Shown here: piece by piece, positions 8,643 through 64,000 of the stretch
Layout of the letters: every line of letters starts with the position of its first letter
How positions within the stretch are numbered: position 1 is the first letter of the stretch
From: Bugula neritina
Taxonomy: Eukaryota > Animalia > Bryozoa
Direction: 5' to 3'
DNA length: 64,000 nucleotides
Assembly: GCA_964035545.1 (NCBI GenBank)
Contig: OZ037765.1
Coordinates: 34,471,504-34,535,503 of the forward strand
Notes under the pieces: model-generated
The model's input: the letters and a program-made list of their open reading frames with translations, nothing else
What the model was told of the DNA's origin: nothing
The model's database searches: none
Made by a program: the position numbers and the translations under genes

Positions 8643-8721
8643 GTGTGCTGTGTGTGTGTGTGCTGTGTGTGTGCTGTGTGTGTGCTGTGCTGTGTGTGTG
8701 CTGTGTGTGTGTGTGTGTGTG
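8183..8721. repeat. Interrupted (TG)n microsatellite
   Basis: ~540 bp of TG with C interruptions; source of five spurious CV/HT-repeat ORFs. Confidence 0.97.
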
Positions 8722-32332: not shown

Positions 32333-35300
32333 CTAAGAGTCATCTTCTCTTTTGTGGCCATTAAACCTAGGAAACAGGTAAAGTTTTCTCATATGAGTGA
32401 GAGTATCCCAGACTACAACCAGCTGTCCTCCACTCTCTAGATTTTTATCTAAGCAAACTTTTCTCACTTTAGTCTGTACCTGAAGAACAGTTAGTAAGTT
32501 CTCTTAGCTTCTGCATTAACCAATCGGAGAAAATATCACTATTCAGGCAGTTCCCATCTTCATACTCAAGATTTCAAGGAATTTAGTGAAAAGCCAATCA
32601 ATTTAGTATAGTAATGTTAGACTCACCTGTTTGAATATAGTGTAGAGGTCATGGTGACAGGCATGTTTATGCATGGAGGATACAAGAGCTCTAATCATTA
32701 GAGATCCATACACAGGGTGAACCTTTGCTATGAATGCTACAAGAAAACACACAGTATATTACACACAGTATATTACACACAGTATATTACACACAGTATA
32801 TTACACACAGTATAATACTGTATATTACACACAGTATAATACTGTATATTACACACTGTATATTTCACACAGTATATTACACACAGTATATTACTGTATA
32901 CTACACACAGTATATTACACACAGTATATTACACACAGTATATTACACACAGTATAATACTGTATATTACACACAGTATAATACTGTATATTACACACTG
33001 TATATTTCACACAGTATATTACACACAGTATATTACACACAGTATATTACACACAGTATATTACACACAGTATATTACACACAGTATATTACACACAGTA
33101 AATTACACATGTATATTACACACAGTATATTACACACAGTATAATACTGTATATTACACACAGTATATTACACACAGTATATTACACACAGTATAATACT
33201 GTATATTACACACAGTATAATACTGTATATTACACACAGTATATTACACACAGTATATTACACACAGTATATTACACACAGTATATTACACACAGTATAT
33301 TACACACAGTTTATTACACACAGTATATTACACACAGTATATTACACACAGTATATTATACACAGTATATTACACACAGTATATTACACACAGTATATTA
33401 CACACAGTATATTACACACAGTATATTACACACAGTATAATACACACAGTATATTACACACTGTATATTACACACAGTATAATACCAAGTATTACATGTG
33501 TGTTACTTACACTCCATGCTAGATTTCACTACTAGCAGGTCATCATAGTTCAGGTTATTCATAGCCTCAGCTTCTTTGTCTCCAGGAACTTTAGCAAGTG
33601 GAGGTGAGATACTCTCCCCCTCCTTTTGTGATTCTCCGATATCAAATCTGTCTATACCTCTTTGGCCATAATCACTTCTCTCTGTAATACAGATCTCATA
33701 ATATTATATTTATTTAATATGATGAGTACAAATAATTTCAAATATGTAAAAATATAGATAACTCTGAAATTGGTTATATGTAGACACACTTAATCATTTA
33801 CTAACAGTCAAGAGAACACAACTCTGAAGTAACCACAAATGTATCGACTGATTACCTCCACTACAGACTTCCAGTATAACAACCTTTGGTTTGCCAGCCA
33901 TTCCTGGGAAGTTTAAAGGGGTCAGAAGGTCATACACATCTGTTAGTTTGACTCGTTTCAGGTCTGTACCCAAGATGTGGTTGTTCAGCCCTCCATGAGT
34001 CATGATAACCAACACATGACATCCCAGATCTTCGTGTTCCTCTTTTGTCACCTCAGATTTTACAGCAGACAGCATTTCCTACAAATATTGTAGAACACAT
34101 GGCAAAAGTTTTATCAAAATTTGGAAAAATTGCTACAACTAATAAAAATACTTTTAGGAATTTAACTCCTTTTAGATAACTTTTAAACAGTAAACCAAAA
34201 TGAAATATTGTATTTAATATTCCTAATAAAACATACCTCAGCCTTCAAGTCTGTGTGTGGCACAACATCAAACTTGAGAGATTTCAACATGGCAGACATA
34301 TTCTCAACATCAACATCTGAACCTTTCCTACACAAATCTGGTCTCTTATCAAAGTTCATGTTGTTTATTATCAGAGCTCTTCCTCTTTTTCTAGTCATAG
34401 TAAACACCTGGATGTAACAGAGAAATATTTGTTACTGCTGAACTAAACAACTGGCAAGAATGTTAAATACTCGTATTAGCGTTTAATATATGAGCACCTT
34501 GTCAGTGTTTGAGAACAGCTGTCTTATCCGTGGGTTACTGGTGGGATTCAGTCTGAGTCTTATAAACTTCATGTCTTCAACTTCCTTTCCATCAGGGTAC
34601 AGATTTTCCTCATCATCAGAGAGATCACTGAGATTGTCATTGGCTGTTATTGTGGTGGTCAAGAGATCTGATTGGCTACTGTCGACGACTATAAAGTATA
34701 AACAGACTACAATAATTAGCTACACAGGGAATAAGTAAGAAATACAATATTATGATAGCTAGCAGTTTGGTATTCAGATGCAATGCAGGAACTTCTTGTG
34801 ATGAGATCTTTCAATAAAGTGAAACTTTTAAAGAACACAAGCTTGTAAAGACTGGTCACTTTGTATTCACCAGAATTAGCTGATCTTTCTTGAGCTCTTC
34901 GAACATCCAGTTCATTCACAAATTTCTCCAACTTATCAGCTTCTCGTTCAGACAGTGGTTCACCTGAAACAATGAATTGCTTGTAAATACAGTCGGGTGT
35001 CGTGAAATCACATTATTATCCTAGTTATATTGATAAATAACTCCTTTCCGAATAAATGCACACATGTGGTAAATTGCAGTAAAATATAATTTTACAGGCA
35101 CTGCACCATAATGCAAACAAACATACATGGGTAGAGCAGAGCACTTGGGATCTCCTCGTCACCACACAGAGTTGTTGAAGATCCGCTACACAGTCTGGTA
35201 CTTGGTGGGGAATGTTTCAAAGAACGAAGACACCATTGAGGTCTTTGCACTTTCTTAGGGCAAGGAAGTCCTAGCAGAAGACAGTGAGCACAGTAGCATG

Positions 35301-38300
35301 TAGTGACAGCTCTACTTGCTGTCCAAGTTTCTAGAGCATGTTTAAGGATATTGTTGTTGTTGGTGATGAGTCTCTCCCACATTCTGCTGATGTTGGCAGC
35401 ATTAGATGATACGTAGAGTGACATTTTTCTAGATTTATGGTCGTGTACCAGCTGTGTGTAGATTCCATCTTGATAGACATTGGTGCCATTTCTTCTCACT
35501 TTTATCCTGGGAGAATCACCGGGAAACAACTCCAACAAGCCAACTGTCATTTGGTGGTAGACATAGTGTGGCAGGGCTAGACCATTGAATTGTGTCTCAA
35601 CATGAAGCAGCATGTCTTTGGGTGAGGAGTAGGGAGTGCTGTAGTAATTTTTAGCAAACTGAGGTACAATGAACCATGGGTCTTCAGACTTGCTATGTAT
35701 TGGACCATGCAGCAAACGGAACGCCTGGAGCAAGCAGATAGCAACTTCAACATTCTCAGAACTGTGAAATATTGTTTCATTTTGAATCAAATAAGCAAGA
35801 AGAGATTGCATCATCAAACCAGTGTTTGTGAAATGATTAACAGATTCCTCAAAGTCCTGCTTCTCAACAGGCATCCCATCCTTTGAATAGCACGGCTGGA
35901 ACTTGTCAACTCTACCCTGCCATATGTTAGGATCATGATGATACAAGACACAGAGAAGTTTGGTAACTTCTGAAATCTTGTGGAATATGTATGGCCTGAG
36001 AAAGCTGATATCTTTATACCACAAAACTTTGCCGCAGTCATGCATGTATGTGAGGATTATGTCCAGCTGACTTGACTCAATGGTTTGAAGTTCGGTTTGT
36101 AAGTATTTCAGTATCTCATCAAAGGTGCTGTACACAGAGGGAATAGGCAGCACTTTTTTATTTACATTCTCCCAGACCAAAGGTAAAGGTTTCACAAAAT
36201 GTTGACTGCTTTGAAGAAGAGACTGTTTGATCAGGTCAAACACTTCATACATATCATCTTTCCCCACCTCATAAATGTCCTCACCAAGAAAAACTCCTTC
36301 AGTTGATTTACTGAAATGTTTGATTTGAGCAAATTCTCCACCCAATGCTTTCTCTTCGCTTATCATCTTCTCACACAGTTGATTTGAAGTTTCTAGAAAG
36401 TTCTTTCGAAGCTTCTGAAACTCTGCATTTTGAAACTTGTCTATATGTGTAAAGATAAGTTTTGGAGCACCCAGAGTTGGGTTAGCCAGATAGAGGTGAG
36501 ACATGTAATCAAAGGCTAATCTTCTAACAGCTTCTCTGTGTGTTGATTCACTTGAAATCTCCTCATACTGTTCCATGTTGACTACTATGACTGGAATACA
36601 GTTCTGTCTCAGAGTCAGTTGATAGGTGATATGGTAGACCTCCTGGCCTCCCATATCAATGACACGGAGAACTGTACCATCCACCTCCACCTCTTCAACA
36701 TTAAACACCTTTGTTGTCTCATCTCTCACAGCATCTGGCCCTCTGTTGGTCAGAACTCTCTTTCTGTCAACATTCTGTAATGTTCTGATTAGACTGGTCT
36801 TCCCAGCCATAGTATTACCCAGCACAGCTATAGTAGCAAATGGTAAGTTTCTACCAGCACCTTTAGCCAAGTCTGTGTAGTATTGTCTCACAGCATCTAC
36901 TCCTCTCTTACATACTTCTGGTGGAGGAGAGGTGAGAGCATTACAATATTTAACATGCAGTGTACGAAGTTGAGCTAGCTGTAGTATCTCAGGATCTAAG
37001 GATGTCAGGGAGTAGTTGGAGGATATATCCAGTTCCTGCAGATTACTCAGTGTGTACACAGGAGATGGTAAACTGGTGAAGTTATTCCATGATATATCCA
37101 GTTTCTCTAACTTCTGCAAACTCTGTATGCTGAGAGAAATACAAATACTGTTTTGTACAAAAATAAATAATATAATTCCATATTATACTCTATAATATAT
37201 ATTATTATAATAAATATTTAGGATACTGCAATTATATTTATAGCATTTTGTATAGATTTTATAGCTGTTAAGAGTTAACTCCCTGATGTTTGATACAAAT
37301 TGGAGCAAGTAAATGATGCAATGCATCACCCAGTAACTGTGGATTGACTAACATTATAATATACCTCAGTATAACATTATAATATATCTCAGTATAGCAT
37401 TATAATATATCTCAGTATAACATTATAATATATCTCAGTATAGTATTATAATATATCTCAGTATAACATTATATTATATCTCAGTATAATATTATATTAT
37501 ATCTCAATATAATATTATAATATATCTCAGTATAACATTATAATATATCTCAGTATAACATTATATTATATCTCAGTATAATATTATAATATATCTCAGT
37601 ATAACATTATATTATATCTCAGTATAATATTATAATACATCTCAGTATAACATTATAATATATCTCAGTATAACATTATAATATATCTCAGTATAATATT
37701 ATAATATATCTCAGTATAATATTATATTATATCTCAGTATAACATTATAATATATCTCCGTATAACATTATATTATATCTCAGTATAATATTATAATATA
37801 TCTCAGTATAATATTATAATATATCTCAGTATAACATTATAATATATCTTAGTATAACATTATAATATATCTCATAATAGACATAATTATAATATTATAA
37901 GTCACTCTGATTAGGCTAAAATATTACGTCATAAGTTTCTACACAATTATATTGACTTTATGTTTATATATTATATTTATTACAGTATCATTCTACACTA
38001 TAATATAATACACACCTGTTTGGTAGAGTTGACAGTTTACAGTTCTCCATGTACAACTCTCTCAATGATAGTAAGGATGTGAATATATTGTCAGGTAGAC
38101 CTTCAGATAGGTTATTCGCTGATATATCCAATACCTCAAGATTCTTCAGTGAAGATATGCTGTAACATAACATACAAGTAGAAAATCATGAAAGGTAATT
38201 GAACTATATACTGTACATTCTACTCAACAATATCATAAGAGGTCACTTATGAGCATTTCATAATATTATAGCAACTTTATATCCCAACATTTATCAGATT

Positions 38301-41300
38301 AAAAAGTTCCAAGTTGTCACACCATGTCTTGCTGAGTACATCTGATAGAATAGAATAGTAAAGACATGACATCACATATATTATGTATAATGATTTATAT
38401 AATGTAATTAGTTGATACAAGTCAGTTTATGTACATCACAAGAGATTAGAAGCTTCTACACAATTATTTAATAATACATTTACATATTGTATTTATTCTA
38501 GTATCATTCTACACTATATTATAATACACACCTGTTTGGTAGAGTTGACAGTTTACAGTTCCTGATGTCTAACTCTCTCAATGATAGTAAGGATGTGAAT
38601 ATATTGTCAGGTAGATCTTCTAATAGGTTATTCCATGATATATCCAATATCTCAAGATTATTCAGTGAAGATATGCTGTAACATAACATACAGGTATGAC
38701 AGTATTTACTTATATATAATCATCACATATTGGTATGCTTTAAATTGAAGCATAAATAGAAATACAATAAAGAAGGTAAATAATACAAAAGTTGTTACTA
38801 AAGCTAGTGTTATTGTGAGGGGAGATTACTCAACATTCTACTACAAGATAATATCTCACCTATGAATATAGTTTTATACCATAGCAATATAATACCTGGT
38901 CCAGTCAACATTACTGTCTACTCCAGATACCCTCAGATGTGTGAGATGAGGAAACAGTTTGTTGATATTTGGGGGAATGTCATACTCCATTCTAACATGA
39001 GTAACTGTATGATGTCTACTTATATCATTGATCTCTTCTATAGTGTAGGATGTAGTATCATTTTTCATCCATTTATCATCAGCTCCATCTATACTGGATG
39101 TGTTGAACCACACCTCGTACTTCTCTATAAAATATTCACCACTTTATAAATAATAACTTTGATATCAAATAATGGAGTGTCTCAACACTATAAACAGTGT
39201 TGAAGTAAACTTGGATATTTTATAACTTCAAAATACATTCTGTGATATATTCTGACAGGTGAAAGGGTAGCCATGTTGTTTATACTTCTGTACAGTATAT
39301 GTTATTGTATCGGTTTTGTGTTAGTGTCTGGTTGCAAGATAAGCTTTAACTACTAGCCAACTTGGCAACAGGTTTTCAAGTTTATTTACTCTCAAATCGT
39401 ACCAATATTGATGCATAGATAAACTTCTTAGCCATCACAATGCCAAAACCGATAGTTTATTCTCACAAAGAGTGTAAATATTGGTGTCTAACTGTGTGCT
39501 CGTATAATGCTAAAAATGCTCCTTTCTGGCGGTTTGGTTATGACACACTGACTCATGCAGTACAGTGAATTAGTACTAGCCCTGCCAGCTAATAATAGCT
39601 TTGGTGAAAGCTTTGAAGCCTGAAAGCTTTAATGATTGGCTGCCTGCCAATACATCTGGGTGGCATACCAATACAGTTATAATATAATATAATATAATAT
39701 AATATAATATAATATAATATAGTATAATATAATATAATACAATATATACTACACACATACTACCACATACTACATATTTCAGTTATATAATATAATATAA
39801 TATAATATAATATAATATATAATAAAGACTAACAACATAATACAGACAACATTACTACTCCCTCTGGTTACTATAGTTACTCAGTTGTTGACAGAACACA
39901 GCTGTAAGGAAAGTAAAATATAACATAATATATTTATATTTTATTCTGTACACTAACTGAAACTGTATGTAAAGGATTAACATGGTCATGTTGTTTATAG
40001 TTCTGTACTGCATGTGTTATGATATATTAATATATTAATATAATATAATACAATATAGTACAATATAATATGATGTAGGTTAGTATAATAGTTACAATAT
40101 AATGCAAATTAAATAACAACATGTTATAGTATGGGTCAACATAATATTTGTTATATAATATAATATATGTCAGTATAATAAAACAACATACTATACTATA
40201 ATTTAATATGATATGATCCGGCCACACGGCAGTGAAAGGTGACCACCACTATAATATACTATAATACAATATAATATAATATAATACAATATAATATACT
40301 ATAATACAATATAATATAATATAACATAATATAATATAATATAATATAACATAATATAATATAATATAATATAATATAACATGATATAATATGGTATAAG
40401 TCAGTATAATAGTTATAGTATAATAGTTATAATAGTTATAGTATAATAGTTAAAGTATAATAGTTATAGTATAATAGTTATAGTATGATAGTTATAGTAT
40501 GATAGTTATAATATAATAGTTATAGTATAATAGTTATAGTATAATAGTTATAGTATAATAGTTATAGTATAATAGTTATAGTATAATAGGTATAGTATAA
40601 TAGTTATAGTATAATAGTTATAGTATAATAGTTATAGTATAATAGTTAGAGTATAATAGTTATAGTATAATAGTTATAGTATAATAGTTATAGTATAATA
40701 GTTATAGTATACTAGTTATAGTATGATAGTTATAATAAATAATAGTTATAGTATAATAGTTATAGTATAATAGTTATAGTATATATATATATATAAATAA
40801 GCAGGTATATAACATTACATAATAAACACTATAACAAAACAGAACTAGGTGCAAAGTAATGAAACTGTAGATTAGAAATGTAAGAGAAGAAGTTATGTTC
40901 TCATGAGAATTTAAATGAAGAGATCTCACTCAACACTGTATATAGAAATACATGGGTGAAACTAAATCATTATAACTAACAATCAGTATATAATATTATA
41001 TAATATATAACATTATATAATAGACACCAGCAAAATATTATTCAGTTGTGGTAAAATTAGTGCAGGGTAAAAAAATGAAAATCGCATGTGTTTCTAGATC
41101 AGAAATGTAGCAAAAGAAGTTATGTTCTCGTGAGAATGTAAACCTGCACCCCAACGTATAGTTTGTTAAGAACAATAAAGAACTTAGGCTACCTCAATTT
41201 CTCCACCACTGTAACTAAATGTCATAACATATAAAAGTAAAATATAAAAGTTCTGTAGTTAGTAGTTGAAGTATTTATATCCATATAATTTACTAACCTA

Positions 41301-46202: not shown

Positions 46203-47070
46203 TGACTCACTGAATAACCTGGTAACTCACTGAATGACCTGGTAACTCACTAAATAACCTGGTAACTCACTGAATAACCTAGTAATTCACTGAATAACCT
46301 GGTAACTCACTAAATAACCTGGTAACTCACTGAATAACCTGGTAACTCACTGAATAACCTGGTAACTCACTGAATAACCTGGTAACTCACTGAATAACCT
46401 GGTGACTCACTGAATAACCTGGTAACTCACTGAATAACCTGGTAACTCACTAAATAACCTGGTAACTCACTGAATAACCTGGTAACTCACTGAATAACCT
46501 GGTAACTCACTGAATAACCTGGTAACTCACTGAATAACCTGGTAACTCACTGAATAACCTGGTAACTCACTGAATAACCTGGTAACTCACTGAATAACCT
46601 GGTAACTCACTGAATAACCTGGTAACTCACTGAATAACCTGGTAGCTCACTGAATAACCTGGTAACTCACTGAATAACCTGGTAACTCACTGAATAACCT
46701 GGTAACTCATTGAATAACCTGGTGACTCACTGAATAACCTGGTAACTCACTGAATAACCTGGTAACTCACTGAATAACCTGGTAGCTCACTGAATAACCT
46801 GGTAACTCACTGAATAACCTGGTAGCTCACTGAATAACCTGGTAACTCACTGAATAACCTGGTAACTCACTGAATAACCTGGTAACTCACTGAATAACCT
46901 GATAACTCACTGAATAACCTGGTGACTCACTGAATAACCTGGTAAGTCACTGAATAACCTGGTAACTCACTGAATAACCTGGTAAATCACTGAATAACCT
47001 GGTAACTCACTGAATAACCTGGTAACTCACTGAATAACCTGGTAACTCACTGAATAACCTGGTAACTCAC
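46203..47070. repeat. 20-bp GGTAACTCACTGAATAACCT minisatellite starting at the NOL11 exon-6 donor
   Basis: ~43 very homogeneous copies; each carries GTGAGT on the minus strand. Confidence 0.96.
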
Positions 47071-50000
47071 GAACTCAGAATCAGCAGACAGTCTCAAACT
47101 GCCCATCATGCTCCTTAGTGTCAACTTGCTGTACTTATATGAGTGAGCCTGCAATGAGCTCTCCGTGTGAGTCAGTATGTATGGAGGTAGAAGAGTCACA
47201 GGTTTATCACCGTAGAGCTCACTGTCCAGACTCTTTAGAACCCTCGTAGTTCTGAACTTGATACTGAATATAAGTAAGACACCTACAAGACCAGCACATG
47301 TCACCATACTTGAGCTGTGACACGTCTAAACAGGTGCTATGAGTACAGCTACACTGATTGGCTTACATCTACTCACATTCAAGTAAAGGAGGCATACAGT
47401 TACAGTAAAACTACTTTACTAGAACAATCATCTTCAGAAAAGGTAAACTATACTAGCCTGTATTCGTAGAGCTGTGAGATGTTGCAATGAGAAGCTGGTC
47501 AGAGTCTAGTAGGTGAAGAGAGACACACTGAGTAGAAAACTGTGAGTTGAGAGAGGAAATAACTTTTTCAGATGTACCGGTAGAGTATAGTATCTCACCC
47601 TTACCACCTGTATAGAGTATTTCAGATAAACTGGTTATTGTAAAGGTGACGTCATACAGAGACACAGTATATATTCAATAGTATCAGACTCACTAGTAGC
47701 AATGTAATTAGACTCAGCATGAGGGACAACTCTACACACTGATGTCACATCTGTGTAGTTGAGAAACACCTGCGTAGATTTGCCAAACACCTGCTTGTCG
47801 TTGAACTGTAACTTATATACAAGGTGTTGTCCCTGAAATAACACAACAGAAACTGTAGATATTTCAACAGCAATGATGATGATGCATGTCAACAACTGTG
47901 ACACTCTACTGTGACACTCTACTGTGACACTCTACTGTGACATTCTACTGTGACACTCTACTGTGACACTCTACTGTGACACTCTACTGCGACACTCTAC
48001 TGCGACACTCTACTGCGACACTCTACTGCGACACTCTACTGCGACACTCTACTGTGACACTCTACTGTGACACTCTACTGTGACACTCTACTGTGACACT
48101 CTACTGCGTCACTCTACTGCGACACTCTACTGCGACACTCTACTGCGACACTCTACTGCGACACTCTACTGCGACACTCTACTGCGACACTCTACTGCGA
48201 CACTCTACTGCGACACTCTACTGTGACACTCTACTGTGACACTCTACTGTGACACTCCACTGCGACACCCTACTCTGACACCCTACTGTGACACTCTACT
48301 GTGACACTCTACTGTGACACTCTACTGTGACACTCTACTGCGACACTCTACTGCGACATTCTACTGTGACACTTTACTGTGACACTCTACTGAGACATTG
48401 TGACACCATACTGACACATTGTGACACCATACTGACACATTGTGACACCATACTGACACATTGTGACATCATACTGACACATTGAGATACTCACATCAAC
48501 AGTCACAATGTAGACAATCTCAGTTCTATTACTCCATCTGTAACTTTTAAACTGACTAATCTCCACGTCAGCATCTCTCAGATCTGGAGGCAGCAGATGG
48601 AGAGACAGTGAAGTGTCCTCCACATGAGACAACCAGCACACACAGTTATTAGATGTGACCACCAGTGGTTCTGTCTTCTCTACTTCTACCAGTTCAGTCA
48701 CCTCAGTTGATAACTACAACAGTTACACTTGTATTGTGAACCAATCATCATTAGGTTATCATTCTCCATATTCTATTCTCACCACTTCAACATTTCTAAT
48801 GCTATAAATATGCTCCACCAAATGATCAACAAATTGTGTTATCGTAAACATATTATTTTATAAATCACAAAACAACTGAAATATTCAAAGTGAGAAATTT
48901 ACCAGTTTCTTCTTCCAGTCCTTGTAGTTAGAAAGTTCATTTGTCCAGACACAAAGTCTCTTCTTTCCAAGATTCTCAACCAAACCAACATAATGTTCTT
49001 CTTCGCGATCATAAACCACAGGCAGACAGAAACTGCTCTCTGATTTGAGAGTACAACTTGATACTGTCTGCTGATCACTCACCTAAGTTTATCACAACTC
49101 AAACTCTAGTATTTATTAATATTCTAAACTGAAAACTACTCTCATGAACGAAGCATATAAACACATGTAGAGTTATTATTACTTTCAGTAATAATTTATT
49201 CCACAGTGAATTATATGAGAAAGAAGCTCTACTGCAGAGAATACTCATCCAGGCCGGTCAAACTCTGAAATAACTAAATTTATTTCCTCAACTCATTAGC
49301 AAAATTCTAAGATCGTTTCAAAAGCGATACAAACAACTCATCATAGCATAAATTTTAAGGCCATTTAGAATTAGTTTAGCAAATACATAAAGGCTATCTT
49401 GATTATGCATGATTTTAAATTGAACTACAGTGGTTGATTTATGATGATTACTCGATAACTAGGTATGAATAAAATAAATTTTAAAGTAATCAAAGGCTAA
49501 GTTAGTAAATGTGTGTCATCACATTTCAATACTCAATAGTAATCACTGAAATTTACTCTAAATATTTATTAGGAGTCAGTGCCATTCACCGAAAGACTTA
49601 ATTAAAAAGTTAGTATCAACCGATTTAATCCAATACTTATAGTTATTACGAATTAGTCAATTCAAAATCAAGTTGAAAAAAAATTCCTGCGTATTTACAT
49701 CGATTATCATAATAATTAATAACTGGTTGACTCGGCATCACTCAGAGCTGCATTAGCCCCATGCTGAATTGATTTTACTATTATAGCACTATTCACTTTT
49801 CAGCGATTGTGAGAGACTTTGACCAAGTGCTTAGTCAGTAAGAGTAAGTTTTTATTTAATTTTACTAAAACACTTTAACTTAGTTTCGCTTATAGTTATT
49901 GAGTTATTCATACTGTGATTATCACTATTCGTACAAATACAAGTCATGAAGTAGACTTTAACTAATAGTTAGTGTTACAGTAACTAACTAAAGTTGTGTT

Positions 50001-51861: not shown

Positions 51862-54800
51862 TCACTGTGGGAGTTGTCTGCCATGGAACTTTGGAAAGAA
51901 GAAAAGTTTTCTAAGGTGAGTGAAAGTACATTCCTGACAATTAGGTACATTACCACCAGCTGCTTCATCTCCTGTCTTCTTACAATATGCAATACTGACT
52001 CGTCTAACTCTGTCTTGTATCTATAAGTATAAATATAAGAGAAATATAAAGCTGATGACTCAACACACTCCACAGTATCATACAAAGAGTAATACTGGAG
52101 TACTTACTATCCTAAACAGCTCACTAACATCTCTGTGACAGCTGTGTCTGTAGAATGTAGCCACCAGTATTCTGATAAACCAGGTACCATAATTCTCATT
52201 CCTACCAGCCTTATAAGCTGCAACATATGAAAATGAGCAGTTAAATGTGAATGTCAGACTATTATGTAAATTTGTTTATATTTAAAAATTGCAATAGCTT
52301 TATTTACATGCAACAGTTTAATTTGCACCAATAAAAGTTTCAGTCAACTCAAATATAATTTTTTTCTCACTAACTTTCTGTACTTGGCTTCACAATGTAG
52401 AAGTCATCAGCATCTAGGTGAGTGAATCTATCAAAGTGAATATTTGGAGACACATGTTGACCTGCAGAAGACTCACTCCCAGCTGTTGCAGAAGATGAGG
52501 GTAGAGGGGTTGGTGTTGGTGGTGAGACGGTGTCTGGGCTTTGTGACTGTGCAGCATTACCAAAGTCAGCTCTGCCTGTAAAAGAAATACATACAATGTA
52601 GACTCTGTGATATGATGGTGAGTAATAAGTTAGGACTGGATTCACAAACAGAACTCTATTACACAGCACTGTTTATTGAATTCTAGTTATGAGGTGTAGC
52701 TGATTTCCACATAGGCATACTCCAATAACATTAGGCATCTTGAAAATAATGATTTGTTAAATTAATTAATGTTATAGTTATAGGAAATTATGCAATCTAA
52801 CTGCTAGTTCTAGTAACATGAGGAACAACTCTGCGTTACTCACTGCCAGAACAGGCATGGAAGATGATGAGTTTGGGTTTTCCTCTCATGGCAGGAAATT
52901 TACTAGCTGAGAGTAGATCTTTGACTTCTGACAAGTTGACAGGTTTACAGTGTCTGTCATAGAAGATGTTTCCAGAAGTTCCGTGTGACATGATGACTAG
53001 AATGAACATGCCAAGATCTTTGTGGTCTCTGTGGGTGGTCTCCTTCCTCACTTCTGATAATATCTCCTGGCAGAATAAAAGTATATAATGGTGTGTAAAA
53101 CAAGTTTGAATGAGTAAATGTGTCTACGCCAAAGCCAAAGCTGCTTCAAAATTACACTATAACATTTATAACAAAGATGAACCATTAAACAGTGCTGCTG
53201 TAATAATTTTATGCATGGAATGTTATGATTCGCTGCATGTAATTATTGGTGTGGGTTATTAGCTGATGGAACACAGTGACTCTTTGTTGAGAATACTTAT
53301 TAATAAATAGATAAAAAGGTTTATACTCACTATCCTTTATTGCACTCCAATATATGTATCCAAAAATAGAAAAAGAGTTAGGGAGGATAACTCCTTACAT
53401 CACGTGGAAAACTATGTACTACTATTATTCTAGGTATAAAGGAAATAGCTATGCACTAAGTATACAAATGTCCTGGTTTGGTAGCTCCGAGTTGTGTCTT
53501 CATCTGATGCTGGCAGTAGACTGAATTCACTGATGTGAGGGCTTCCTTTTATATGTTGGGATGTAGCTAGCCTAGAAAGTTCCATGCAAATTCGAGCGAG
53601 TTCGCTCGAATTGCAGGGGATTCGCAGGGTCATAACAAAAGGTTCGCAGGAATTCGCTCGAATCGAGCGAACTTCGAAGGGAAATCCTAGTCATCTTTAT
53701 TATGTGAGCAGTCCTATGCGTAGCTAGGAACAATAACTGATCCCGTCATTACCATCATGACACTTGGCTGTTAATGGACTGGGGCTATGCAAATGGTTTA
53801 TTTAGGAAAAACACGCATTCCATGGGAATGAAAGAAATACTAGTAAGGAAATACACGCAACAATTACAATATACACAATTTTACCACACACACAGGATAG
53901 TTAAGGGCAAACTTTTAGCTGCAACTGCCTTGCTGAGGTTTGCATTGTAATCATATAAGAATTTAGTGCCAGTAAAATAAAATCTCACCTAAGTGTGCTA
54001 GAGTCAAAATTTAAAAACTCTGTTGTAGACCTTTTTTCCCCCAGTGTAACTTTCTTGGAAATTTCAATTTTCGTTTTTTTTGCAAAGTTATAGACAAAAA
54101 ACTGCCCAATTTTGGCCAATTTTGCCTGAAAAGCTGACTTTTCAGTGCCAGAAAAAATATCTCAGCAGCAAAACATGATATCTGAATAAAAATTGCACTG
54201 CTGGAATCCTGAGATATTTCTCCAGTGCAATTTTTTTCTTTCTCCGATAACTCTTCTAGATTGCCCATAAATTGGTGATTTATACACTCGATCTGATAAG
54301 AAAACTCTGCCAGGATTTCAAGCCAGCGCGCTATTTGGCTTGATGGTTCAGCCCGTCGACACAGCCATATCAAGGACGCATGGTCCGTTCTTAGCCTGAA
54401 CGTGTGTCCGTACAGGTATGGTCTAAAGTGTTTAACCGCCTTGACTACTGCCAGGAGTTCTCTCCTGGTGGTGCAGTAGTTCTTTTCAGGCGTCGACAGG
54501 GCCTTACTATGGTAAGCTACCACCACCTCGCGACCATCTTGGACTTGAGTCAGCACAGCCCCCACATTGTGGTTACTAGCATCAGTATCCAAAATGTACT
54601 CCTTCGCCGGATTAGGTTACGCCAAGATGGGCGCCTCTACCAAACGATCCTTGAGGTGGTCAAATGCCTGCTGTTCTGTCTGTGTCCACTGCCATCGCAC
54701 CCCCTTTGCTGTCAGCCGGTTTAGTGGCTGTGCAATTCCTGCGAAGTTCGGTATGTGCTGACGATAGTACCCTACCAGTCCCAGGAATGCCCGCAATTCA

Positions 54801-57800
54801 GGGAGGTCGACAGGGACAGCCCAGTCTCTCACAGCCCGTACCTTCTCGGGGTCGGTGGCGACCCCGGCTCCACCGACTACATGGCTCAGGTACTTAATCT
54901 CTTGCTGCAACAACGTGCACTTAGAGGGCTTGAGCTTCAGACCAGCAGCTCGAAGTCTGTCAAACACCTCTCTGATCCAACTGACCTGTGTGTCAAAGTC
55001 GGGGGAGATGACAATGACATCATCGAGATAGATGAGCAAGGTCTTCCAGTGCAGCCTACTCAGGACCTGCTCCATGAGTAGCTGAAAGGTGGCCGGTGCG
55101 GGCGTAAGTCCGAACATCAGTACCTTCCATTTCCAGAGCCCATCCCGCGGCCTTGTCCTGTGCATCAGGACTCAGGGGCACCTGCCAATACCCGCTTAGC
55201 AAGTCCAACGTGCTGAAGAACTTGCTACAAGCGAAGGCATCTAACGACTCATCATTCCTAAGAAGAGGGTAAGCATCCTGGATGGTCATGCTGTTCAGTT
55301 TGCGATAATCCAAGCAAAACCGCCAGCAACCATCCTTTTTTCGAACCAGGACAACTGGCGAGCTCCAAGCACCATTGGCTGGCTCAATCATGTCCTGGCT
55401 CAGAAGGTCTTGCACCTGTCTGCTCACTTCCTTCTCCTTCTCAGGACCTAACCGGCGGGTCGGCTGCCTGATAGGCACCATCCCAGCCGCCAGGGGTATC
55501 TCATGACAGATAGCCTTAGCTAGGCCCATGTCGTGATCGCCGCAACTGAACATATCTTTGTACTCAGGGAGGAGCTGCACTACTACTAGGCATTCCCGCT
55601 TGCTCTCACAGGCATCCCCGCACAATTCCACCAAGTGTTCAGGCACCGGCCCCCTGCCGTCCCTAGTGGGTACCCATCGAGCCTCGTCCGCTGTTTCCAG
55701 GGCGGGACCAACATCCTCCTCCTGTATGGAGTGGAATTTCCCCACTAGCGACCCAGCCAGCAATTCTACCGACTCCGTGAAAGGGTTTACGCACTGTACC
55801 AGAAACTCCCCCCTCTCATCCAGCCTATTCAGACTGTTGGCGAGCTGGACGCCCTCCAGTGCTCCCTCCACCACTCCTAAATTGGAGATTTCCCCACAGT
55901 TCACTCTGCAGCGAACTGTAGCCCGAGAGCGCCCAGGTACAGTACAACGCTGTACCACCTGCACTTCCACCACCAAGGGTCGGCCAAATCGGTCGACACA
56001 GGCCAGCTCACGCCCGGCAATCACCACCGCCGACTTGCTAAAGTCGATGTAGCACCTGTGTCGCTTCAGAAATGGCATGCCCAAGATGGCGTCCTCCTTG
56101 ATTGGCCAAGACGATCAGGCCATCCTAGCAGCCTGACACCAGCTGCTTCACTCAACTATTGGCAAAAAGTATTCTTTTGATACAAATACAAAATACTAAT
56201 AATCTACTAATAATACAATTATTAATACAATTAACACACTATGAAAAACCCTTACAATATCACAGCTAGCTACAGCCTGGGGATAATCAACTACAGGAAA
56301 GGATAAGAAATTGATACAGTAACCTGTTTACTCAGGTCAAACAGAGGATCATCTTCATTGGCTACAACAAATCCCATGTCTTTCAACAGAGTTTTGATGT
56401 TAACATAGTCGATGTATGAACCATCTCGGGTTGCCTCAGTCAGTTCACTGCCATCATCTCTAAAGAATCTCTCATTGTTTATGATCATGACACGACCTCT
56501 AACAGGGTTACTCATCGCATAAACCTGTAAACCAATCAATTTTATCTTACTAAGAGTAGACAACAGAAAACGGGCTAATCAAATCAAGTATGAAATGTAA
56601 TAGAAATTAAATGAAAAGCCAAAGTATCAAAAAAATATTAATCAATGATCTAAAAAGAAATCAAAGAACTTGTTTTACCTGTCGGTGGTTGTCAAACAGC
56701 TGTTTTACTGGTTCATTGTTGGTAGGTTTCAGCTGCATACCCTCAACCTGAGATATAAAAGGTTCAAAGTCATCTTTAGTGAAATCAGCATATCCTTCTT
56801 CTTCTATATCAGAGCATTCACTGATGTTGTCGTCTTCAACAAGGACTGAGGCAGTTTGAGTTAACAAACTCTTTTCTCCACCCATCTCTAAAATAAAACA
56901 AAAGGTGATATATTCAGTGCTAAGTAACAGATACTAAATATCAAAATGACTGTAAACAATGAACAGAATCAATATTTGAGTGTTTTTCTGTCAATAATTA
57001 TACAAATAAATTACAACAATTGAAGGTGTGTGAGTTTTTGCAGAGAGCCTATATAACTGAGGGTCATGAGTTCTTGTCTATTGCTGTTTACATATGACTG
57101 AGCTCAGGCAAAGGGTGCTACTTTTAACAGTAACAATTTATGATAGACAACTGATCATACCAGAAACAGTTGAAGCAGTCCCTTCTCTTGCAGATCTCAG
57201 TTTGGTGACACATTCTTTTATGTTATCAGCTTCTTCTGGAGAGAGAGGACTGCCTGGAGAATGAAAAACTGTCAGTTACCACAAAAATCATTACAATAAT
57301 AGAAGTTGATAAATAAACCACAGAGAAATCAACTGTTTTATTGAAATAAAATTAGACGTACATGGATACAGAAAAGCACTGGGTATCTCCTCATCACCAC
57401 ACAGGGTTGTTGAAGATCCGCTGCACAGTCTGGGACTTGTTGGGGTAGAATGTTTCAAAGAGCGAAGACACCACGGAGGATTGAGTACTTTGTTAGGACA
57501 AGGAAGTCCTAGCAAAAGACAGTGAGCACAGTAGCATGTAGTGACTGGTCTACTCGCTGACCAAGTTTCTAGGACATGTCTAAGGATGTTGTTGTTGGTG
57601 GTGATGAGTCTCTCCCACATTCTGCTGATATTGGCAGCATTAGATGACACGTGGAGTGACACTTTTCGAGATTTGTAGTCGTGTACCAGCTGTGTGTAGA
57701 TACCATCTTGATAGACATTGGCGCCATTTTTCTTCACTTTAATCACAGCAAATTCATCGCAAAACAACTCTAGCAAACCAACATTCATCTGCTGGTAGAC

Positions 57801-59367
57801 ATATTGTGGTAGCGCTAAGCCATTGAATTGGGTTTCAACTCGAAGAAGCATATTCTTTGGCGAAGAGTAAGAGGTATTAAAGAAGTCATTAGCAAACTGA
57901 GGAACAATAAAACATGGCTCCTTGAAATCAGCAGGTAAAGGACCATATAACAAACGGAATGTGAGGAGCAAGCAAACAGCAACTTTTACATCTTCCAGAC
58001 TGGTAAATGGTGTTTCTTGTTTAACCAGATGAGTGAGAAGACATTGCATCATCAAACCAGTCTCAGTGAAATGATTAACAAATCTCTCAAAGTCTTCTTT
58101 TTCAACAGGCATCCCATCCTCTGAAAAATATGGCTGGAACTTGTCAACTCTACTCTGCCATATGCTAGGATCATGATGATACAAGACACAGAGAAGTTTG
58201 GTGACTTGTGAAATCTTGTGGAATATGTATGGCCGGAGAGAGCTGATATCTTTATACCACAAGACTTTGCCGCAGTCATGCATGTATGTGAGGATTATGT
58301 CCAGCTGACTCGATTCAATTTGTTGAAGTTCGGTTTGCACATATTTCAGTATCTCATCAAAGGTGCTGTACACAGAGGGAATAGACAGCACTTTTTCATT
58401 TACTTCCTCCCAGACCAAAGGTAAAGGTTTCACAAAATGGTGACTGCTTTGAAGAAGAGACTCTTTGATCAGGTCAAACACTTCATACTTATCATCTTTC
58501 CCCACCTCATAAATTTCCTCACCAAGAAAGACTTCTTCAGTTGATTCACTAAAATGTTTGATTTGAGCAAATTCTCCACCCAATGCTTTCTCTTCTTTAA
58601 TCATCTCTTCACACAGCTGATTGGAAGTGTCTAGAAAGTTCGTTCGAAGCTCCTGGAATTCCACATTTTGAAACTTATCTTTATGTGTGAAGATAATTTT
58701 TGGAGCACCCAGGGTTGGGTTAGCCAAGTAGAGGTGAGACATGTAATCAAAGGCTAATCTTTTAACAGCTTCTCTGTGTGTTGATTCATTTGAAACCTCT
58801 TCGTACTGTTCCATGTTGACTACTATGACTGGAATGCAGTTCTGTCTCAGTGTCAGTTGATAAGTGATATGATAGACTTCCTGGCCTCCCATATCTATGA
58901 GACGGAGTACTGTACCATCCACCTCCACCTCTTCAACATTAAACACCTTTGTTGCCTCATCTCTCACAGCATCTGGTCCTCTGTCGGTCAGAACTCTCTT
59001 TCTGTCAGCATTCTGTAATGTTCTGATTAGACTGGTTTTTCCAGCCATCGTATTACCCAGCACAGCTATAGTAGCGAATGGAAGACTTCTACCAGCTCCT
59101 TTAGCCAAGTCTGTGTAGTATTGTCTCACAGCATCTACTCCTCTCTCACATACTTCCAGTGGAGGAGAGGTGAGAGCATTACAATTTTTAACATACACTG
59201 TACGAAGTTGAGTTAGCTGTAATATCTCAGAATCTAAGGATGTCAAAGAGTAATTGGAAGATATATTCAGTTCTTGCAGATTAGTCAGTGTGTACACAGG
59301 AGATGGTAAATTGGTGAAGTTACTTGACGATATGTCCAGTTCTTTTAACTTCTGTAGAATCTGTATG
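51862..59367 (-). CDS. LRR-Roc-COR-caspase fusion protein, copy 2 (5' exons beyond window end)
   Basis: Exons 59367-57362, 57253-57161, 56887-56679, 56524-56324, 53066-52844, 52575-52375, 52217-52108 and 52020-51862 are GT-AG, in phase and have no stops. Motifs: GNTMAGKTS / DMGGQ / THKD; caspase RGRVMIINN, IMSHG, GKPKLIIFHACSG, GRNENYGTWFI, RKLFFFP. Confidence 0.88.
53570..53690. mobile_element. Small palindromic element (TTCGCTCGAA/TCGAGCGAA motifs, CTAG ends)
   Basis: CpG-rich, self-complementary ~120 bp in an AT-rich intron. Confidence 0.45.
54286..56130 (-). mobile_element. Decayed Ty3/Gypsy LTR-retrotransposon pol fragment (protease remnant, RT, RNase H)
   Basis: ILGMPFL; SSPVVLVRKKDG.WRFCLDYRKLN; LDLLSGYWQV; YLDD; DTDAS..NYCTTRRELLA..TDHASL. 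Frameshift near 55150, stop at 54617, no integrase or LTRs; GC-rich relative to the flanks. Confidence 0.93.
57362..59367 (-). CDS. Large exon of copy 2: LRRs + Roc GTPase + COR
   Basis: ORF 57291-59486 trimmed to splice sites; close paralog of 35127-37129. Confidence 0.9.
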
Positions 59368-59604
59368 CTGACAAAAATACAATTGTTGTTTTGAATAGGC
59401 CTTTGTATAAACATATAAATAATAAAATTCCATAATATACTTTGTAATATAATACCACTGTAGTAAATATATAAGATTCTCTGCAATTTCTATTGTTTAG
59501 TAATTATATTTTATAGCTGCTTGAAGTTACACTCCCTGGTATTTGATGGAATAAGGCAGGTTAATTATACAATGCATCACACAGTAACTGTTTATTGACT
59601 ACCC

Positions 59605-62600
59605 TTATAATATATCTCACTATACTATTACAATATATCGCAGTATAATATTATAATATATCTCAGTATAACATTACAATATATCGCAGTATAATATTAT
59701 ATTATATCTCAGTATAACATTATAATATATCTCAGTATAACATTATATTATATCTCAGTATAACATTACAATATATCTCAGTATAACATTATATTATATC
59801 TCAGTATAATATTACAATATATCTCAGTATAACATTATAATATATCTCAGTATAATATTAAAATATATCTCAGTATAACATTATATTATATCTCAGTATA
59901 ACATTATAATATATCTCAGTATAACATTATAATATATCTCAGTATAACATTATAATATATCTCAGTATAATATTATATTATATCTCAGTATAGTATTATA
60001 ATATATTTTAGTATAACATTATAATATATCTCAGTATAATATTATATTATATCTCAGTATAATATTATAATATATCTCAGTATAATATTATAATATATCT
60101 CAGTATAACATTATAATATATCTCAGTATAACATTATAATATATCTCAGTATAATATTACAATATATCTCAGTATAACATTATATTATATCTCAGTATAA
60201 CATTATAATATATCTCAGTATAACATTATAATATATCTCAGTATAACATTATATTATATCTCAGTATAACATTATAATATATCTCAGTATTATATTATAA
60301 TATATCTCAGTATAATATTATAATATATCTCAGTATAATATTATATTATATCTCAGTATACATTATATTATATCTCAGTATAACATTATAATATATCTCA
60401 GTATAATATTACAATATATCTCAGTATAATATTATAATATACCTCAGTATAACATTATATCATATCTCAGTATAACATTATAATATATCTCAGTATAACA
60501 TTATAATATATCTCAGTATAATATTATAATATATCTGAGTATAACATTATATTATATCTCAGTATAACATTATAATATATCTCAGTATAACATTATCATA
60601 TATCTCAGTATAACATTATATTATATCTCAGTATAACATTATAATATATCTCAGTATAACATTATAATATATCTCAGTATAACATCATATTATATCTCAG
60701 TATAATATTATAATATATCTCAGTATAACATTATAATATATCTCAGTATAATCTTAAAATATATCTCAGTATACATTATATTATATCTCAGTATAACATT
60801 ATAATATATCTCAGTATAACATTATAATATATCTCAGTATAACATTATAATATATCTCAGTATAATATTATATTATATCTCAGTATAGTATTATAATATA
60901 TTTTAGTATAACATTATAATATATCTCAGTATAATATTATATTATATCTCAGTATAATATTATAATATATCTCAGTATAATATTATAATATATCTCAGTA
61001 TAACATTATAATATATCTCAGTATAACATTATAATATATCTCAGTATAATATTACAATATATCTCAGTATAACATTATATTATATCTCAGTATAACATTA
61101 TAATATATCTCAGTATAACATTATAATATATCTCAGTATAACATTATAATATATCTCAGTATTATATTATAATATATCTCAGTATAATATTATAATATAT
61201 CTCAGTATAACATTATATTATATCTCAGTATAATATTATAATATATCTCAGTATAACATTATAATATATCTCAGTATAATATTACAATATATCTCAGTAT
61301 AATATTATAATATACCTCAGTATAACATTATATCATATCTCAGTATAACATTATAATATATCTCAGTATAACATTATAATATATCTCAGTATAATATTAT
61401 AATATATCTGAGTATAACATTATATTATATCTCAGTATAACATTATAATATATCTCAGTATAACATTATCATATATCTCAGTATAACATTATATTATATC
61501 TCAGTATAACATTATAATATATCTCAGTATAACATTATAATATATCTCAGTATAACATCATATTATATCTCAGTATAATATTATAATATATCTCAGTATA
61601 ACATTATAATATATCTCAGTATAATCTTAAAATATATCTCAGTATACATTATATTATATCTCAGTATAACATTATAATATATCTTAGTATAATATTATAA
61701 TATATCTCAGTATAATATTATAATATATCTCAGTATAATATTATAATATATCTCAGTATACATTATATTATATCTCAGTATAACATTATAATATATCTTA
61801 GTATAACATTATAATATATCTCAGTATAATATTACAATATATCTCAGTATAATATTATAATATACCTCAGTATAACATTATAATATATCTCAGTATAATA
61901 TTATAATATATCTCAGTATAACATTATAATATATCTTAGTATAATATTATAATATATATCAGTATAACATTATAATATATCTCAGTATAATATTATATTA
62001 TATCTCAGTATAATATTATAATATATCTCAGTATAATATTATAATATATCTCAGTATAACATTATAGTATATCTCAGTATAACATTATAATATATCTCAG
62101 TATAATATTACAATATATCTCAGTATAACATTATAATATATCTTAGTATAATATTATATTATATCTCAGTATAACATTACAATATATCTCAGTATAACAT
62201 TATAATATATCTCAGTATAACATTATAATATACCTCAGTATAACATTATATTATATCTCAGTATAATATTATAATATATCTCAGTATAATATTATATTAT
62301 ATCTCAGTATAACATTATAATATATCTCAGTATAACATTATATTATATCTCAGTATAACATTATATTATATCTCAGTATAACATTATAATATATCTCAGT
62401 ATACATTATAATATATCTCAGTATAACATTATAATATATCTCAGTATAACATTATAATATATCTCAGTATAACATTATAATATATCTCAGTATAACATTA
62501 TAATATATCTCAGTATAATATTATAATATATCTCAGTATAACATTATAATATATCTCAGTATAATATTATAATATATCTCAGTATAACATTATAATATAT

Positions 62601-64000
62601 CTCAGTATAACATTATAATATATCTCAGTGTAATATTATATTATATCTCAGTATATCATTATAATATATCTCAGTATAGTATTATAATATATCTCAGTAT
62701 AACATTATAATATATCTCAGTATAGCATTATAATATATCTCAGTATAACATTATAATATATCTCAGTATAGCATTATAATATATCTCAGTATAACATTAT
62801 ATTATATCTCAGTATAACATTATATTATATCTCAGTATAACATTATAATATATCTCAGTATAACATTATAATATATCTCAGTGTAACATTATAATATATC
62901 TCAGTATAATATTATATTATATCTCAGTATAGTATTATAATATATCTCAGTATAACATTATAATATATCTCAGTATAACATTATAATATATCTCAGTATA
63001 ATATTGTAATATATCTCAGTATAACATTATAATATATCTCAGTATAACATTATAATATATCTCAGTATAACATTATATTATATCTCAGTATAATATTAAA
63101 ATATATCTCAGTATAACATTATAATATATCGCAGTACAACATTATAATATATCTCAGTATAACATTATAATATATCTCAGTATAACATTATATTATATCT
63201 CAGTATAACATTATATTATATCTCAGTATAACATTATAATATATCTCAGTATAACATTATAATATATCTCAGTATAATATTATAATATATCTTAGTATAA
63301 CATTATATTATATCTCAGTATAGTATTATAATATATCTCAGTATAACATTATAATATATCTCAGTATAACATTATAATATATCTCAGTATAATATTGTAA
63401 TATATCTCAGTATAACATTATAATATATCTCAGTATAACATTATAATATATCTCAGTATAACATTATATTATATCTCAGTATAACATTATAATATATCTC
63501 AGTATAATATTATAATATATCTCAGTATAATATTATATTATATCTCAGTATAACATTATAATATATCTCAGTATAACATTATAATATATCTTAGTATAAC
63601 ATTATAATATATCTCAGTATAACATTATATTATATCTCAGTATAATAATATAATATATCTCAGTATAACATTATATTATATCTCAGTATAATATTATAAT
63701 ATATCTCAGTATAACATTATATTATATCTCAGTATAACATTATAATATATCTCAGTATAACATTATATTATATCTTAGTATAATATTATAATATATCTCA
63801 GTATAATATTATAATATATCTCAGTATAATATTATAATATACCTCAGTATAACATTATAATATATCTCAGTATAATATTATAATATAATATCTCAGTATA
63901 ACATTATAATATATCTCAGTATAACATTATAATATATCTCAGTATAACATTATAATGTATCTCAGTATAACATTATATTATATCTCAGTATAATATTATA
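59605..64000. repeat. >4.3-kb 23-bp minisatellite (copy-2 intron), runs off window
   Basis: Unit CAGTATAACATTATAATATATCT with variant units; some longer blocks recur (higher-order duplication). Confidence 0.97.

Follow-up and report, generated by a model that had tools for sequence, protein, structure and literature searches.

A predicted intact Roco-caspase gene with a re-paired head and tail in a tandem family of the bryozoan Bugula neritina

We examined a stretch of 64,000 nucleotides from the genome of the bryozoan Bugula neritina (GenBank assembly GCA_964035545.1, contig OZ037765.1, positions 34,471,504 to 34,535,503 of the forward strand), which is referred to below as the window. It carries two genes of the same strand in which leucine-rich repeats (LRRs) and a Roc-COR module are followed by a caspase. 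One of them, copy 2, is the main subject here, and the other, copy 1, is used for comparison. Copy 2 is a predicted intact gene of 16 exons and ~1460 codons on the minus strand, with eight of its exons inside the window; a leader exon is followed by seven two-LRR cassettes, a 2-kb LRR-Roc-COR exon (the head), and seven exons that encode a linker and the caspase (the tail). Taken together, the data make it reasonably probable that copy 2 is an intact LRR-Roc-COR-caspase gene, that it belongs to a tandem array in which its head and tail were re-paired, and that its product acts as a sensor, a switch and an effector in one chain.

The exons were rebuilt by reading three frames around each candidate, and all boundaries were then checked by script. 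The frame across junctions was followed by carrying the split codon only, and searches and fold predictions were run exon by exon. Window position n corresponds to C1:34471503 + n, and positions above 64000 continue the window numbering (Table 1). The frame of copy 2 is open through all 16 exons (1460 codons), and every boundary is AG/GT. The seven cassettes share a common acceptor and donor context, each encodes two LRRs, and they are in phase 2 at both ends. This phase fits the acceptor of the head exon at 59367, where the exon starts with the bases found at the start of a cassette, so that the head is in phase with the LRR cassettes upstream; the head donor carries 1 nt into the next exon. 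The bases carried over seven junctions are 1,1,0,0,1,1,0 in both copies, without an internal stop in either.

These results bear on a preliminary description made from the letters of the window, in which copy 2 was said to share its intron phases and three exon sizes (93, 223 and 110 nt) with copy 1 and to have an open frame throughout. All of this was borne out, and its end points proved exact, 51862 being the last base of the stop codon and 59367 the acceptor of the head exon. Its spacing of ~10 kb between the copies has to be corrected: 12.8 kb separate the stop codon of copy 2 from the putative start codon of copy 1, and 14.7 kb separate it from the copy 1 head exon. The 5' exons of copy 2, sought beyond the window as that description had proposed, were found there as a leader and seven in-phase 144-nt LRR exons.

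Table 1 Features of the window and the adjoining DNA, in window numbering
Feature	Position	Strand	Size	Remarks
Copy 2, leader exon	76914-76742	-	173 nt	putative ATG; beyond the window
Copy 2, LRR cassettes (seven)	71607-71750, 72503-72646, 72912-73055, 73825-73968, 75010-75153, 75419-75562, 76329-76472	-	144 nt each	beyond the window
Copy 2, intron between cassette 7 and head exon	59368-64000 (part in window)	-	12.2 kb	
Copy 2, head exon	59367-57362	-	2006 nt	three LRRs, Roc, COR-A, COR-B, short Cys/His-rich end
Copy 2, tail exon 1	57253-57161	-	93 nt	phase 1 in, phase 1 out; AG/GT, open
Copy 2, linker exon	56887-56679	-	209 nt	acidic, between COR and caspase
Copy 2, large-subunit exon	56524-56324	-	201 nt	start of the caspase large subunit; Peptidase_C14
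Copy 2, catalytic exon	53066-52844	-	223 nt	Peptidase_C14
Copy 2, intersubunit exon	52575-52375	-	201 nt	Ser/Pro/Thr-rich linker, then Asp-rich stretch, small-subunit start
Copy 2, small-subunit exon	52217-52108	-	110 nt	
Copy 2, last coding exon	52020-51862	-	159 nt	TGA stop at 51864-51862
23-nt satellite	59605 to ~65.9 kb		~6 kb	AT-rich; at least 191 copies, 92% matches, GC content 0.16
Long terminal repeat (LTR)-type element	65933-69621	+		opposite to copy 2; GC-rich, ~200-nt direct repeats at both ends, DSG aspartic-protease motif
Rearranged LTR retroelement remnant	53189-56256	-		same orientation as copy 2; between the large-subunit and catalytic exons
L007, next gene upstream of copy 2	86375-101163 (head 99169-101163)	-		intact class-A Roco-caspase gene
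Copy 1, whole gene	32333-39068	-		same layout; class-B tail, only two LRR cassettes
Copy 1, leader exon	39068-38896	-		
Copy 1, LRR cassettes (two)	38675-38532, 38159-38016	-		
Copy 1, head exon	37129-35127	-	2003 nt	
Copy 1, tail exons	34963-34871	-	93 nt	
	34688-34498	-	191 nt	
	34407-34237	-	171 nt	
	34078-33856	-	223 nt	
	33681-33511	-	171 nt	
	32736-32627	-	110 nt	
	32479-32333	-	147 nt	
Short version of the 23-nt satellite	~37300-37900		~0.6 kb	upstream of the copy 1 head
20-nt minisatellite	46205-47070		20 nt x 43	95-96% matches
13-nt minisatellite	47895-48397		13 nt x 39	95-96% matches
Shorter 20-nt array	~82.5-83.0 kb			upstream of copy 2
Voltage-gated cation channel exons	26656-30176	-	four exons	just downstream of copy 1
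(CA/TG)n-type microsatellite	8037-8758			long, imperfect; strong GC skew
Open reading frame	10535-10945	+	136 codons	Ser/Pro/Tyr-rich

Within the head exon of copy 2, Pfam detected Roc (30.9 bits, cut-off 27) and LRR_4 above its cut-off. The COR assignment is made because the predicted fold matches COR structures, the Pfam score of COR-A being under its cut-off. The AlphaFold model of the head (alignment of 45 relatives) has a mean predicted local distance difference test (pLDDT) value of 87.6, and its top Foldseek matches are LRRK1 (8e05), the Chlorobium tepidum LRR-Roc-COR protein (6hlu), LRRK2, 3dpu and 3dpt. For the Roc-COR tandem 3dpu and the COR domain 3dpt, the target-normalised template-modelling (TM) scores are 0.62-0.67. 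The Roc motifs G..GKT (P-loop), DxxG and THxD are present, and head residues G102, G107, K108, T137, D156, G158/G159, T225, H226 and D228 are invariant or nearly so in the 45 relatives. The model thus points to an LRR-Roc-COR head with the Roc and COR features of the Roco family. No NACHT or NB-ARC match was obtained with Pfam in the head, only Roc, MMR_HSR1, Arf, Ras and LRRs; copy 2 may work like an NLR, yet it is not an NLR by its switch domain. A homodimer prediction with two chains of head residues 293-666 scored 0.00 and carries no weight either way.

Past COR-B, a cluster of Cys, His and Trp residues (W600, C611, H613, C614, W630, C654) is likewise invariant or nearly so in the 45 relatives. 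It occupies head residues ~600-666 (window 57363-57560, minus strand), with a weaker model at residues 630-650, and it may form a small metal-binding knuckle particular to the family.

In the tail, Peptidase_C14 was matched by the large-subunit exon (E = 4e-4) and the catalytic exon (E = 4.8e-10), as well as by their counterparts in copy 1. The large-subunit exon aligns with the start of caspase-3 p17 and places an Arg over caspase-3 Arg64 of the S1 pocket. The catalytic exon, which was also aligned to an ancestral caspase-6, carries the catalytic His in SHG and the catalytic Cys in HACSG, at the positions of caspase-3 His121 and Cys163; compared with QACRG of canonical caspases, HACSG has His for Gln and Ser after Cys. 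The second Arg of the S1 pocket lies in the 110-nt exon, where weak sequence matches align it with CED-3 (WRN motif) and caspase-2 and extend over the GSWFI motif of these proteins, for which copy 2 has GTWFI. Both S1 arginines are therefore present in copy 2, and the S1 Gln is replaced by His. By these exon-by-exon matches, the large and small subunit regions stand in caspase order. The caspase of copy 1 has EVCSG at the catalytic Cys, with Glu for Gln, and is without the second S1 Arg; to judge from these residues, the two copies probably differ in the substrate pocket. The 209-nt linker exon matched no Pfam family, and several of its Asp-containing stretches may be cleavage sites.

Is such a fusion limited to the two genes of the window? 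A six-frame search with the copy 2 head covered the whole genome (216,009,554 bases in 321 contigs) and yielded 67 scored full-length Roc-COR head matches out of 157 candidates, all but two without an internal stop. Searches with the 223-nt exons of both copies gave ~137 caspase His-Cys exons of this type in the genome. A caspase His-Cys exon follows 66 of the 67 scored heads downstream on the same strand, at a median distance of 1.6 kb (about 1-3 kb). The genome of Bugula neritina thus holds a family of at least 67 LRR-Roc-COR-caspase genes, far more than the two copies from which the preliminary description had concluded that the fusion is real, duplicated and maintained. That conclusion is upheld by the head-caspase pairing, by gene models of another bryozoan, by an intact metagenomic relative and by ratios of non-synonymous to synonymous substitution rates (dN/dS) of ~0.2, which are described below.

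The best named relatives are from Watersipora subatra, which is also a cheilostome bryozoan. Two of its RefSeq proteins, XP_067947674.1 (1419 aa) and XP_067948342.1 (1413 aa), combine LRRs, a Roc-COR head and Peptidase_C14 in one chain, and the copy 2 model is of nearly the same length. Proteins covering the head were found by exhaustive profile search, and domains were assigned with Pfam. Peptidase_C14 of XP_067947674.1 has E = 1.5e-36, and this protein is collinear with the LRR cassettes, the head and the caspase exons of copy 2 up to its C-terminal residue: by tblastn, the large-subunit exon corresponds to residues 1132-1193, and the stretch of the 110-nt and last exons corresponds to residues 1340-1419, while the 93-nt, linker and 201-nt intersubunit exons found no match in it. 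In XP_067948342.1, matches were obtained to one cassette, to the head and, of the five caspase exons, to three, and their order is that of copy 2. Several shorter Watersipora models stop within the caspase. A search with the Watersipora caspase part gave eight long LRR-caspase proteins on several chromosomes, all of them from Watersipora; this was a word-index search of restricted reach and does not imply absence elsewhere. RefSeq labels the Watersipora relatives 'MFHAS1 homolog'. Moreover, a public metagenome contig of 20 kb (L035) carries a compact gene with the layout of copy 2, a tail of the copy 2 type and every exon intact.

These data raise a further question: have head and caspase always descended together? 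Tails were typed with 1.5 kb downstream of heads L001-L030, the window, L031-L034 and the genome exon tables. In 30 paralogues, the tail aligns in nucleotides either to that of copy 2 (class A, 14 genes) or to that of copy 1 (class B, 15 genes), never to both, and in one gene, L023, to neither. The proteins of copies 1 and 2 are 88% identical in the leader and 83% in the head, then 33-47% in every tail exon (37% in the 93-nt exon). Their nucleotides are 87% identical over a stretch that begins 0.65 kb upstream of the head and ends 7 nt after it, and nothing aligns beyond; in six A/B pairs, homology stops 3-13 nt after the head exon. On the maximum-likelihood tree of heads, at least five changes of tail class are needed, of which well-supported branches force four, and a tree constrained to hold the A-tailed genes in a single clade was worse by 255 log-likelihood units (approximately unbiased (AU) test, p ~1e-61). 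The synonymous sites of copy 2 and its upstream neighbour L007 have diverged by 0.27 in the head and by ~0.05 in the tail, the tails being 95% identical, and the head of copy 2 is closest to those of L002 and L003, 225-290 kb off.

The data show that the head and tail of copy 2 have separate histories and that recombination between paralogues re-paired two old tail classes with closely related heads, at least four times. The break always falls at the donor site of the head exon. Repeated unequal crossing-over or gene conversion between similar tandem heads is the simplest account, and tail classes A and B are too different to recombine with each other. That the sizes of 93, 223 and 110 nt and the phases are common to both classes shows their descent from one ancestral Roco-caspase tail. 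A simple local duplication followed by fast divergence of the caspase was rejected: identity is 87% up to the donor, and 7 nt on there are no alignable nucleotides, a step that synonymous or intron divergence cannot make and that recurs in independent A/B pairs. The preliminary description had pictured a local duplication with heavy caspase divergence. A duplication did occur, as 13 kb upstream of copy 1 match 10 kb upstream of copy 2 at 83-96%, which indicates a tandem segmental duplication, and the low identity of the tails is confirmed; the caspase halves, however, did not diverge in place after it, but represent the two old classes that meet at the step.

Two other paralogues deserve mention. 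L023 (G000:C1:32581055-32586046) has a head 82% identical to that of copy 2, and its nearest caspase exon lies 3.75 kb off and is 35-47% identical; its tail may represent a third class. The head of L030 (G000:C1:35061449-35066440) is 70% identical to that of copy 2 and sits on a long branch, and its 223-nt exon encodes the same 74 residues as those of copy 2 and L010, which reflects either very strong constraint on class A or recent conversion.

Another important question is whether these genes are under selection. In comparisons of copy 2 with seven paralogues, dN/dS of the head is 0.20-0.24; relative to L002, there are 38.5 synonymous and 33.5 non-synonymous differences (p = 1e-8). A similar ratio, 0.23 (p = 2e-9), was obtained when the class-A tail of copy 2 was compared with that of L035, with differences at 39.5 synonymous and 35.5 non-synonymous sites. 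Single exons are conserved to different degrees: the 93-nt exon is 89% identical to that of copy 2 in L007 and 79% in L035, the 201-nt intersubunit exon is 98% and 92% identical, respectively, and the 110-nt exon of L035 is 100% identical. Both genes keep the catalytic His and Cys residues of copy 2. Chance open frames were rejected as an explanation on the strength of the Pfam and structural matches and of dN/dS. The seven LRR cassettes of copy 2 show a different pattern: their overall ratio of non-synonymous to synonymous differences per site (pN/pS) is 1.1, versus 0.2 for the head, and the differences fall mainly on the x positions that the LxxLxLxxN strands expose to solvent.

Retroelement remnants lie in two introns of copy 2. 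The intron before its head contains the 23-nt satellite and the LTR-type element (Table 1); the satellite also occurs in a short version at the corresponding place upstream of the copy 1 head, so that the array has expanded ~ten-fold in copy 2. In the caspase intron, the GC-rich retroelement remnant (GC content 0.52) includes RVT_1 and RT_RNaseH, matched by Pfam in open reading frames (ORFs) within 54011-56084 that occupy three frames, and no integrase was seen in the remnant. The same intron of L007 holds a 7.2-kb version of this LTR retroelement, bounded on either side by a 164-nt terminal repeat, and another insertion, of 2.8 kb, lies between the 93-nt and linker exons of L007, whose tail exons are open and 88-100% identical to those of copy 2. 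In L035, the site is empty, and the alignment of this contig with copy 2 is interrupted at 56257 and 53188. Because the insertion is common to copy 2 and L007, it is older than their split, and copy 2 retains a rearranged remnant of it. In the last four tail exons (223, 201, 110 and 159 nt), 16 of 693 sites (2.3%) distinguish copy 2 from L007, compared with 55 of 1000 (5.5%) in the neighbouring non-coding DNA (Fisher p = 0.001). This contrast favours a gene that was still constrained after the retroelement arrived.

How might the encoded protein work? In Roco proteins, the nucleotide state is coupled to COR-mediated self-association, and initiator caspases are activated by induced proximity. 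From Roco biology, the induced proximity of initiator caspases and the predicted bacterial conflict systems that combine LRRs, an AP-GTPase and COR (PMC8195603), we infer that the copy 2 protein would be a sensor, a switch and an effector in one chain. The variable concave face of the LRRs would bind a ligand, and binding would alter the nucleotide state and self-association of Roc-COR, as in other Roco proteins. Two caspase domains would thereby be brought together and activated in the manner of initiator caspases. The Asp-rich linkers would probably be sites of self-cleavage, and the outcome would be cell death or immune signalling.

Three other explanations compete with that of an intact, working one-chain receptor. 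Copy 2 could be turning into a pseudogene whose exons are still intact, but whose insertions disconnect the LRR exons from the head or cut the transcript short ahead of the catalytic exon. Such decay would suit the 12.2-kb intron before the head, which measures 0.45-1.3 kb in paralogues with a visible cassette, the 4297 nt between the head and the catalytic exon (family median ~1600) and the orientation of the retroelement remnant on the strand of the gene. Nevertheless, we regard it as unlikely, given that 16 of 16 exons are open with canonical splice sites and that the insertion predates the split from L007; change in the last four tail exons after that split has been 2.4 times lower than in the neighbouring non-coding DNA, synonymous changes are over-represented, and the catalytic residues have stayed intact in both genes. 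It is very improbable that the Roco and caspase parts are two neighbouring genes or alternative transcripts rather than one polypeptide. An in-frame Met in the linker exon and another in the first caspase exon could start a caspase-only product, but there is no stop before the head donor, the phases match over all junctions in both tail classes, the two parts keep the same strand, order and ~1-3 kb spacing in 66 of 67 pairs, the Watersipora models join them, and the intervening 93-nt and linker exons are conserved under purifying selection.

The third explanation concerns function. The fused family might serve self/non-self recognition between colonies (fusion or rejection) or programmed tissue turnover (polypide degeneration, metamorphosis) instead of pathogen sensing. 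The host is colonial, and a receptor family that is large, recombining and prone to polymorphism and that carries a death effector would fit allorecognition as well as it would fit immunity. Bryozoans are listed among the colonial animals with allo-incompatibility (PMC8195603). On the other side, the logic of LRR, NTPase and effector is aimed mostly at invaders in plants, animals and bacteria. Tandem families of more than 60 genes are also commoner among pathogen receptors than among the allorecognition loci known in animals, and we consider such a role quite unlikely.

Several points weigh against our interpretation of copy 2 as an intact sensor-switch-effector gene. Splicing and expression are predicted from the nucleotide sequence, and the start codon, together with possible exons upstream of the leader, is putative. 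Of the copies examined, copy 2 is the most disrupted, with the satellite and the LTR element in its 12.2-kb intron and the retroelement remnant in its tail, and the remnant, lying on the same strand, could end transcripts early. The test of selection after the insertion is based on 16 exon differences, which are few. Pfam gave COR-A in the head 16 bits against a cut-off of 35. With HACSG in place of QACXG, the Asp specificity and even the activity of the caspase appear uncertain. A pN/pS of 2.1 at 'hypervariable' LRR codons was discarded as biased, the codons having been chosen after seeing the data. Finally, the ligand, the GTP-driven and COR-mediated dimerisation, and the immune role are proposed for copy 2 by analogy with other systems.

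The remaining features of the window lie apart from copy 2. Two minisatellites occupy the DNA between copies 1 and 2, and a shorter array of the 20-nt type is found upstream of copy 2 (Table 1). The four exons just downstream of copy 1 match positions 2-239 of the Ion_trans profile in order and belong to a separate gene, possibly one for a single-repeat, CatSper- or NaV-like channel. On both strands, the (CA/TG)n-type microsatellite gives rise to spurious Cys/Val-rich and His/Thr-rich ORFs of ~180-240 codons. The Ser/Pro/Tyr-rich ORF has no Pfam match and may be an exon of an unrelated gene.

Known animal pathways link pathogen sensing to caspases via STAND ATPases and death-fold adaptors, and Roc-COR is the module mutated in LRRK2 Parkinson's disease. 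Here, a Roc-COR switch is wired directly to a caspase, and at least 67 genes have this arrangement, their LRR surfaces being variable and their protease tails interchangeable. If the proposed function is correct, the family would offer a simple natural system for studying how the Roco GTPase cycle controls an attached enzyme, and it would show the bacterial layout of LRR, GTPase, COR and effector in use on a large scale by an animal. A bolder idea, which we put forward tentatively and hold to be possible rather than probable, is that bryozoans possess a germline-encoded, recombination-diversified repertoire of one-chain death receptors, with more than 60 tandem genes exchanging cassettes, heads and tails of at least two functionally distinct kinds. 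An Asp-type pocket would belong to one kind of tail and an altered pocket to the other, so that recognition specificity and protease output could be re-paired independently. In animals, such a repertoire would correspond to the NLR clusters of plants and the AP-GTPase conflict systems of bacteria. Beside STAND ATPases and death-fold adaptors, it would be a third way of connecting recognition to caspase activation. For annotation, genes of this kind are labelled 'MFHAS1 homolog' or 'uncharacterized', and they may supply most caspase domains of the genome. Copy 2 also illustrates that members of the family tolerate kilobases of intronic retroelement and satellite DNA while their exons are conserved.

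A literature search found no paper on an animal Roco-caspase family. What is new for copy 2 is the exon model, the class-A tail with an intact catalytic set, the insertion shared with L007, the discordance of synonymous divergence between head and tail, and the empty site in L035. Compared with known Roco proteins (LRRK1, LRRK2, MFHAS1, DAPK1 and the Chlorobium tepidum Roco), copy 2 has the same succession of LRR, Roc and COR, although its head is only 11-15% identical to Roco structures in structural alignments. These proteins have a kinase or nothing after COR, whereas copy 2 has a caspase there. Vertebrates have 1-4 members of the Roco family, in contrast to the at least 67 of the Bugula neritina family, whose LRRs come from repeated 144-nt cassette exons.

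With the NLR inflammasomes (NLRC4, NLRP1 and NLRP3 with caspase-1) and the Apaf-1 apoptosome with caspase-9, copy 2 would share the induced-proximity logic of sensor, switch and caspase. Their switch is a STAND ATPase, while that of copy 2 is a Ras-like Roc GTPase, and the inflammasome caspase is recruited via CARD/PYD adaptors, while that of copy 2 is covalently attached. By this analogy, copy 2 resembles an NLR inflammasome collapsed into one polypeptide.

Bacterial proteins in which LRRs, an AP-GTPase (Roc) and COR are joined to caspases or other effectors have been predicted computationally as conflict systems (Kaur et al. 2021, PMC8195603). They have the same order of fast-evolving LRRs, GTPase, COR and a variable effector, and several paralogues with different effectors occur in one genome. 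The bryozoan family shows this module order and carries two or three tail classes on related heads, and the bacterial paralogues with different effectors parallel its A and B tails. The bryozoan gene differs in that it belongs to an animal, is spliced and encodes a caspase of the classical animal type, for which caspase-3, caspase-6 and CED-3 are the best matches. The only prokaryotic matches seen for the copy 2 head have 31-34% identity over ~28% of its length. The likeness is one of module order and is compatible with common descent as well as with independent fusion.

Among animals, a direct link between LRRs and a caspase was predicted in the amphioxus 'LRRs-caspase' hybrid genes and interpreted as a quick way of turning recognition into apoptosis (Zhang et al. 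2008, PMC2575513). These genes are likened to copy 2 by their description; they are reported to keep QACXG and are a few genes rather than a large tandem family, and the term 'Roc' is never used in that paper. In the mollusc Aplysia, a few genes encode Roco proteins fused to TIR or death domains (PMC9334734). They share with the bryozoan family a lophotrochozoan Roc-COR joined to an immune signalling domain, the effector there being an adaptor (TIR or death-like) and not a protease. The amphioxus LRRs-caspase models and the Roco-TIR and Roco-death proteins of Aplysia are thus the nearest animal precedents of the Roco-caspase family described here.

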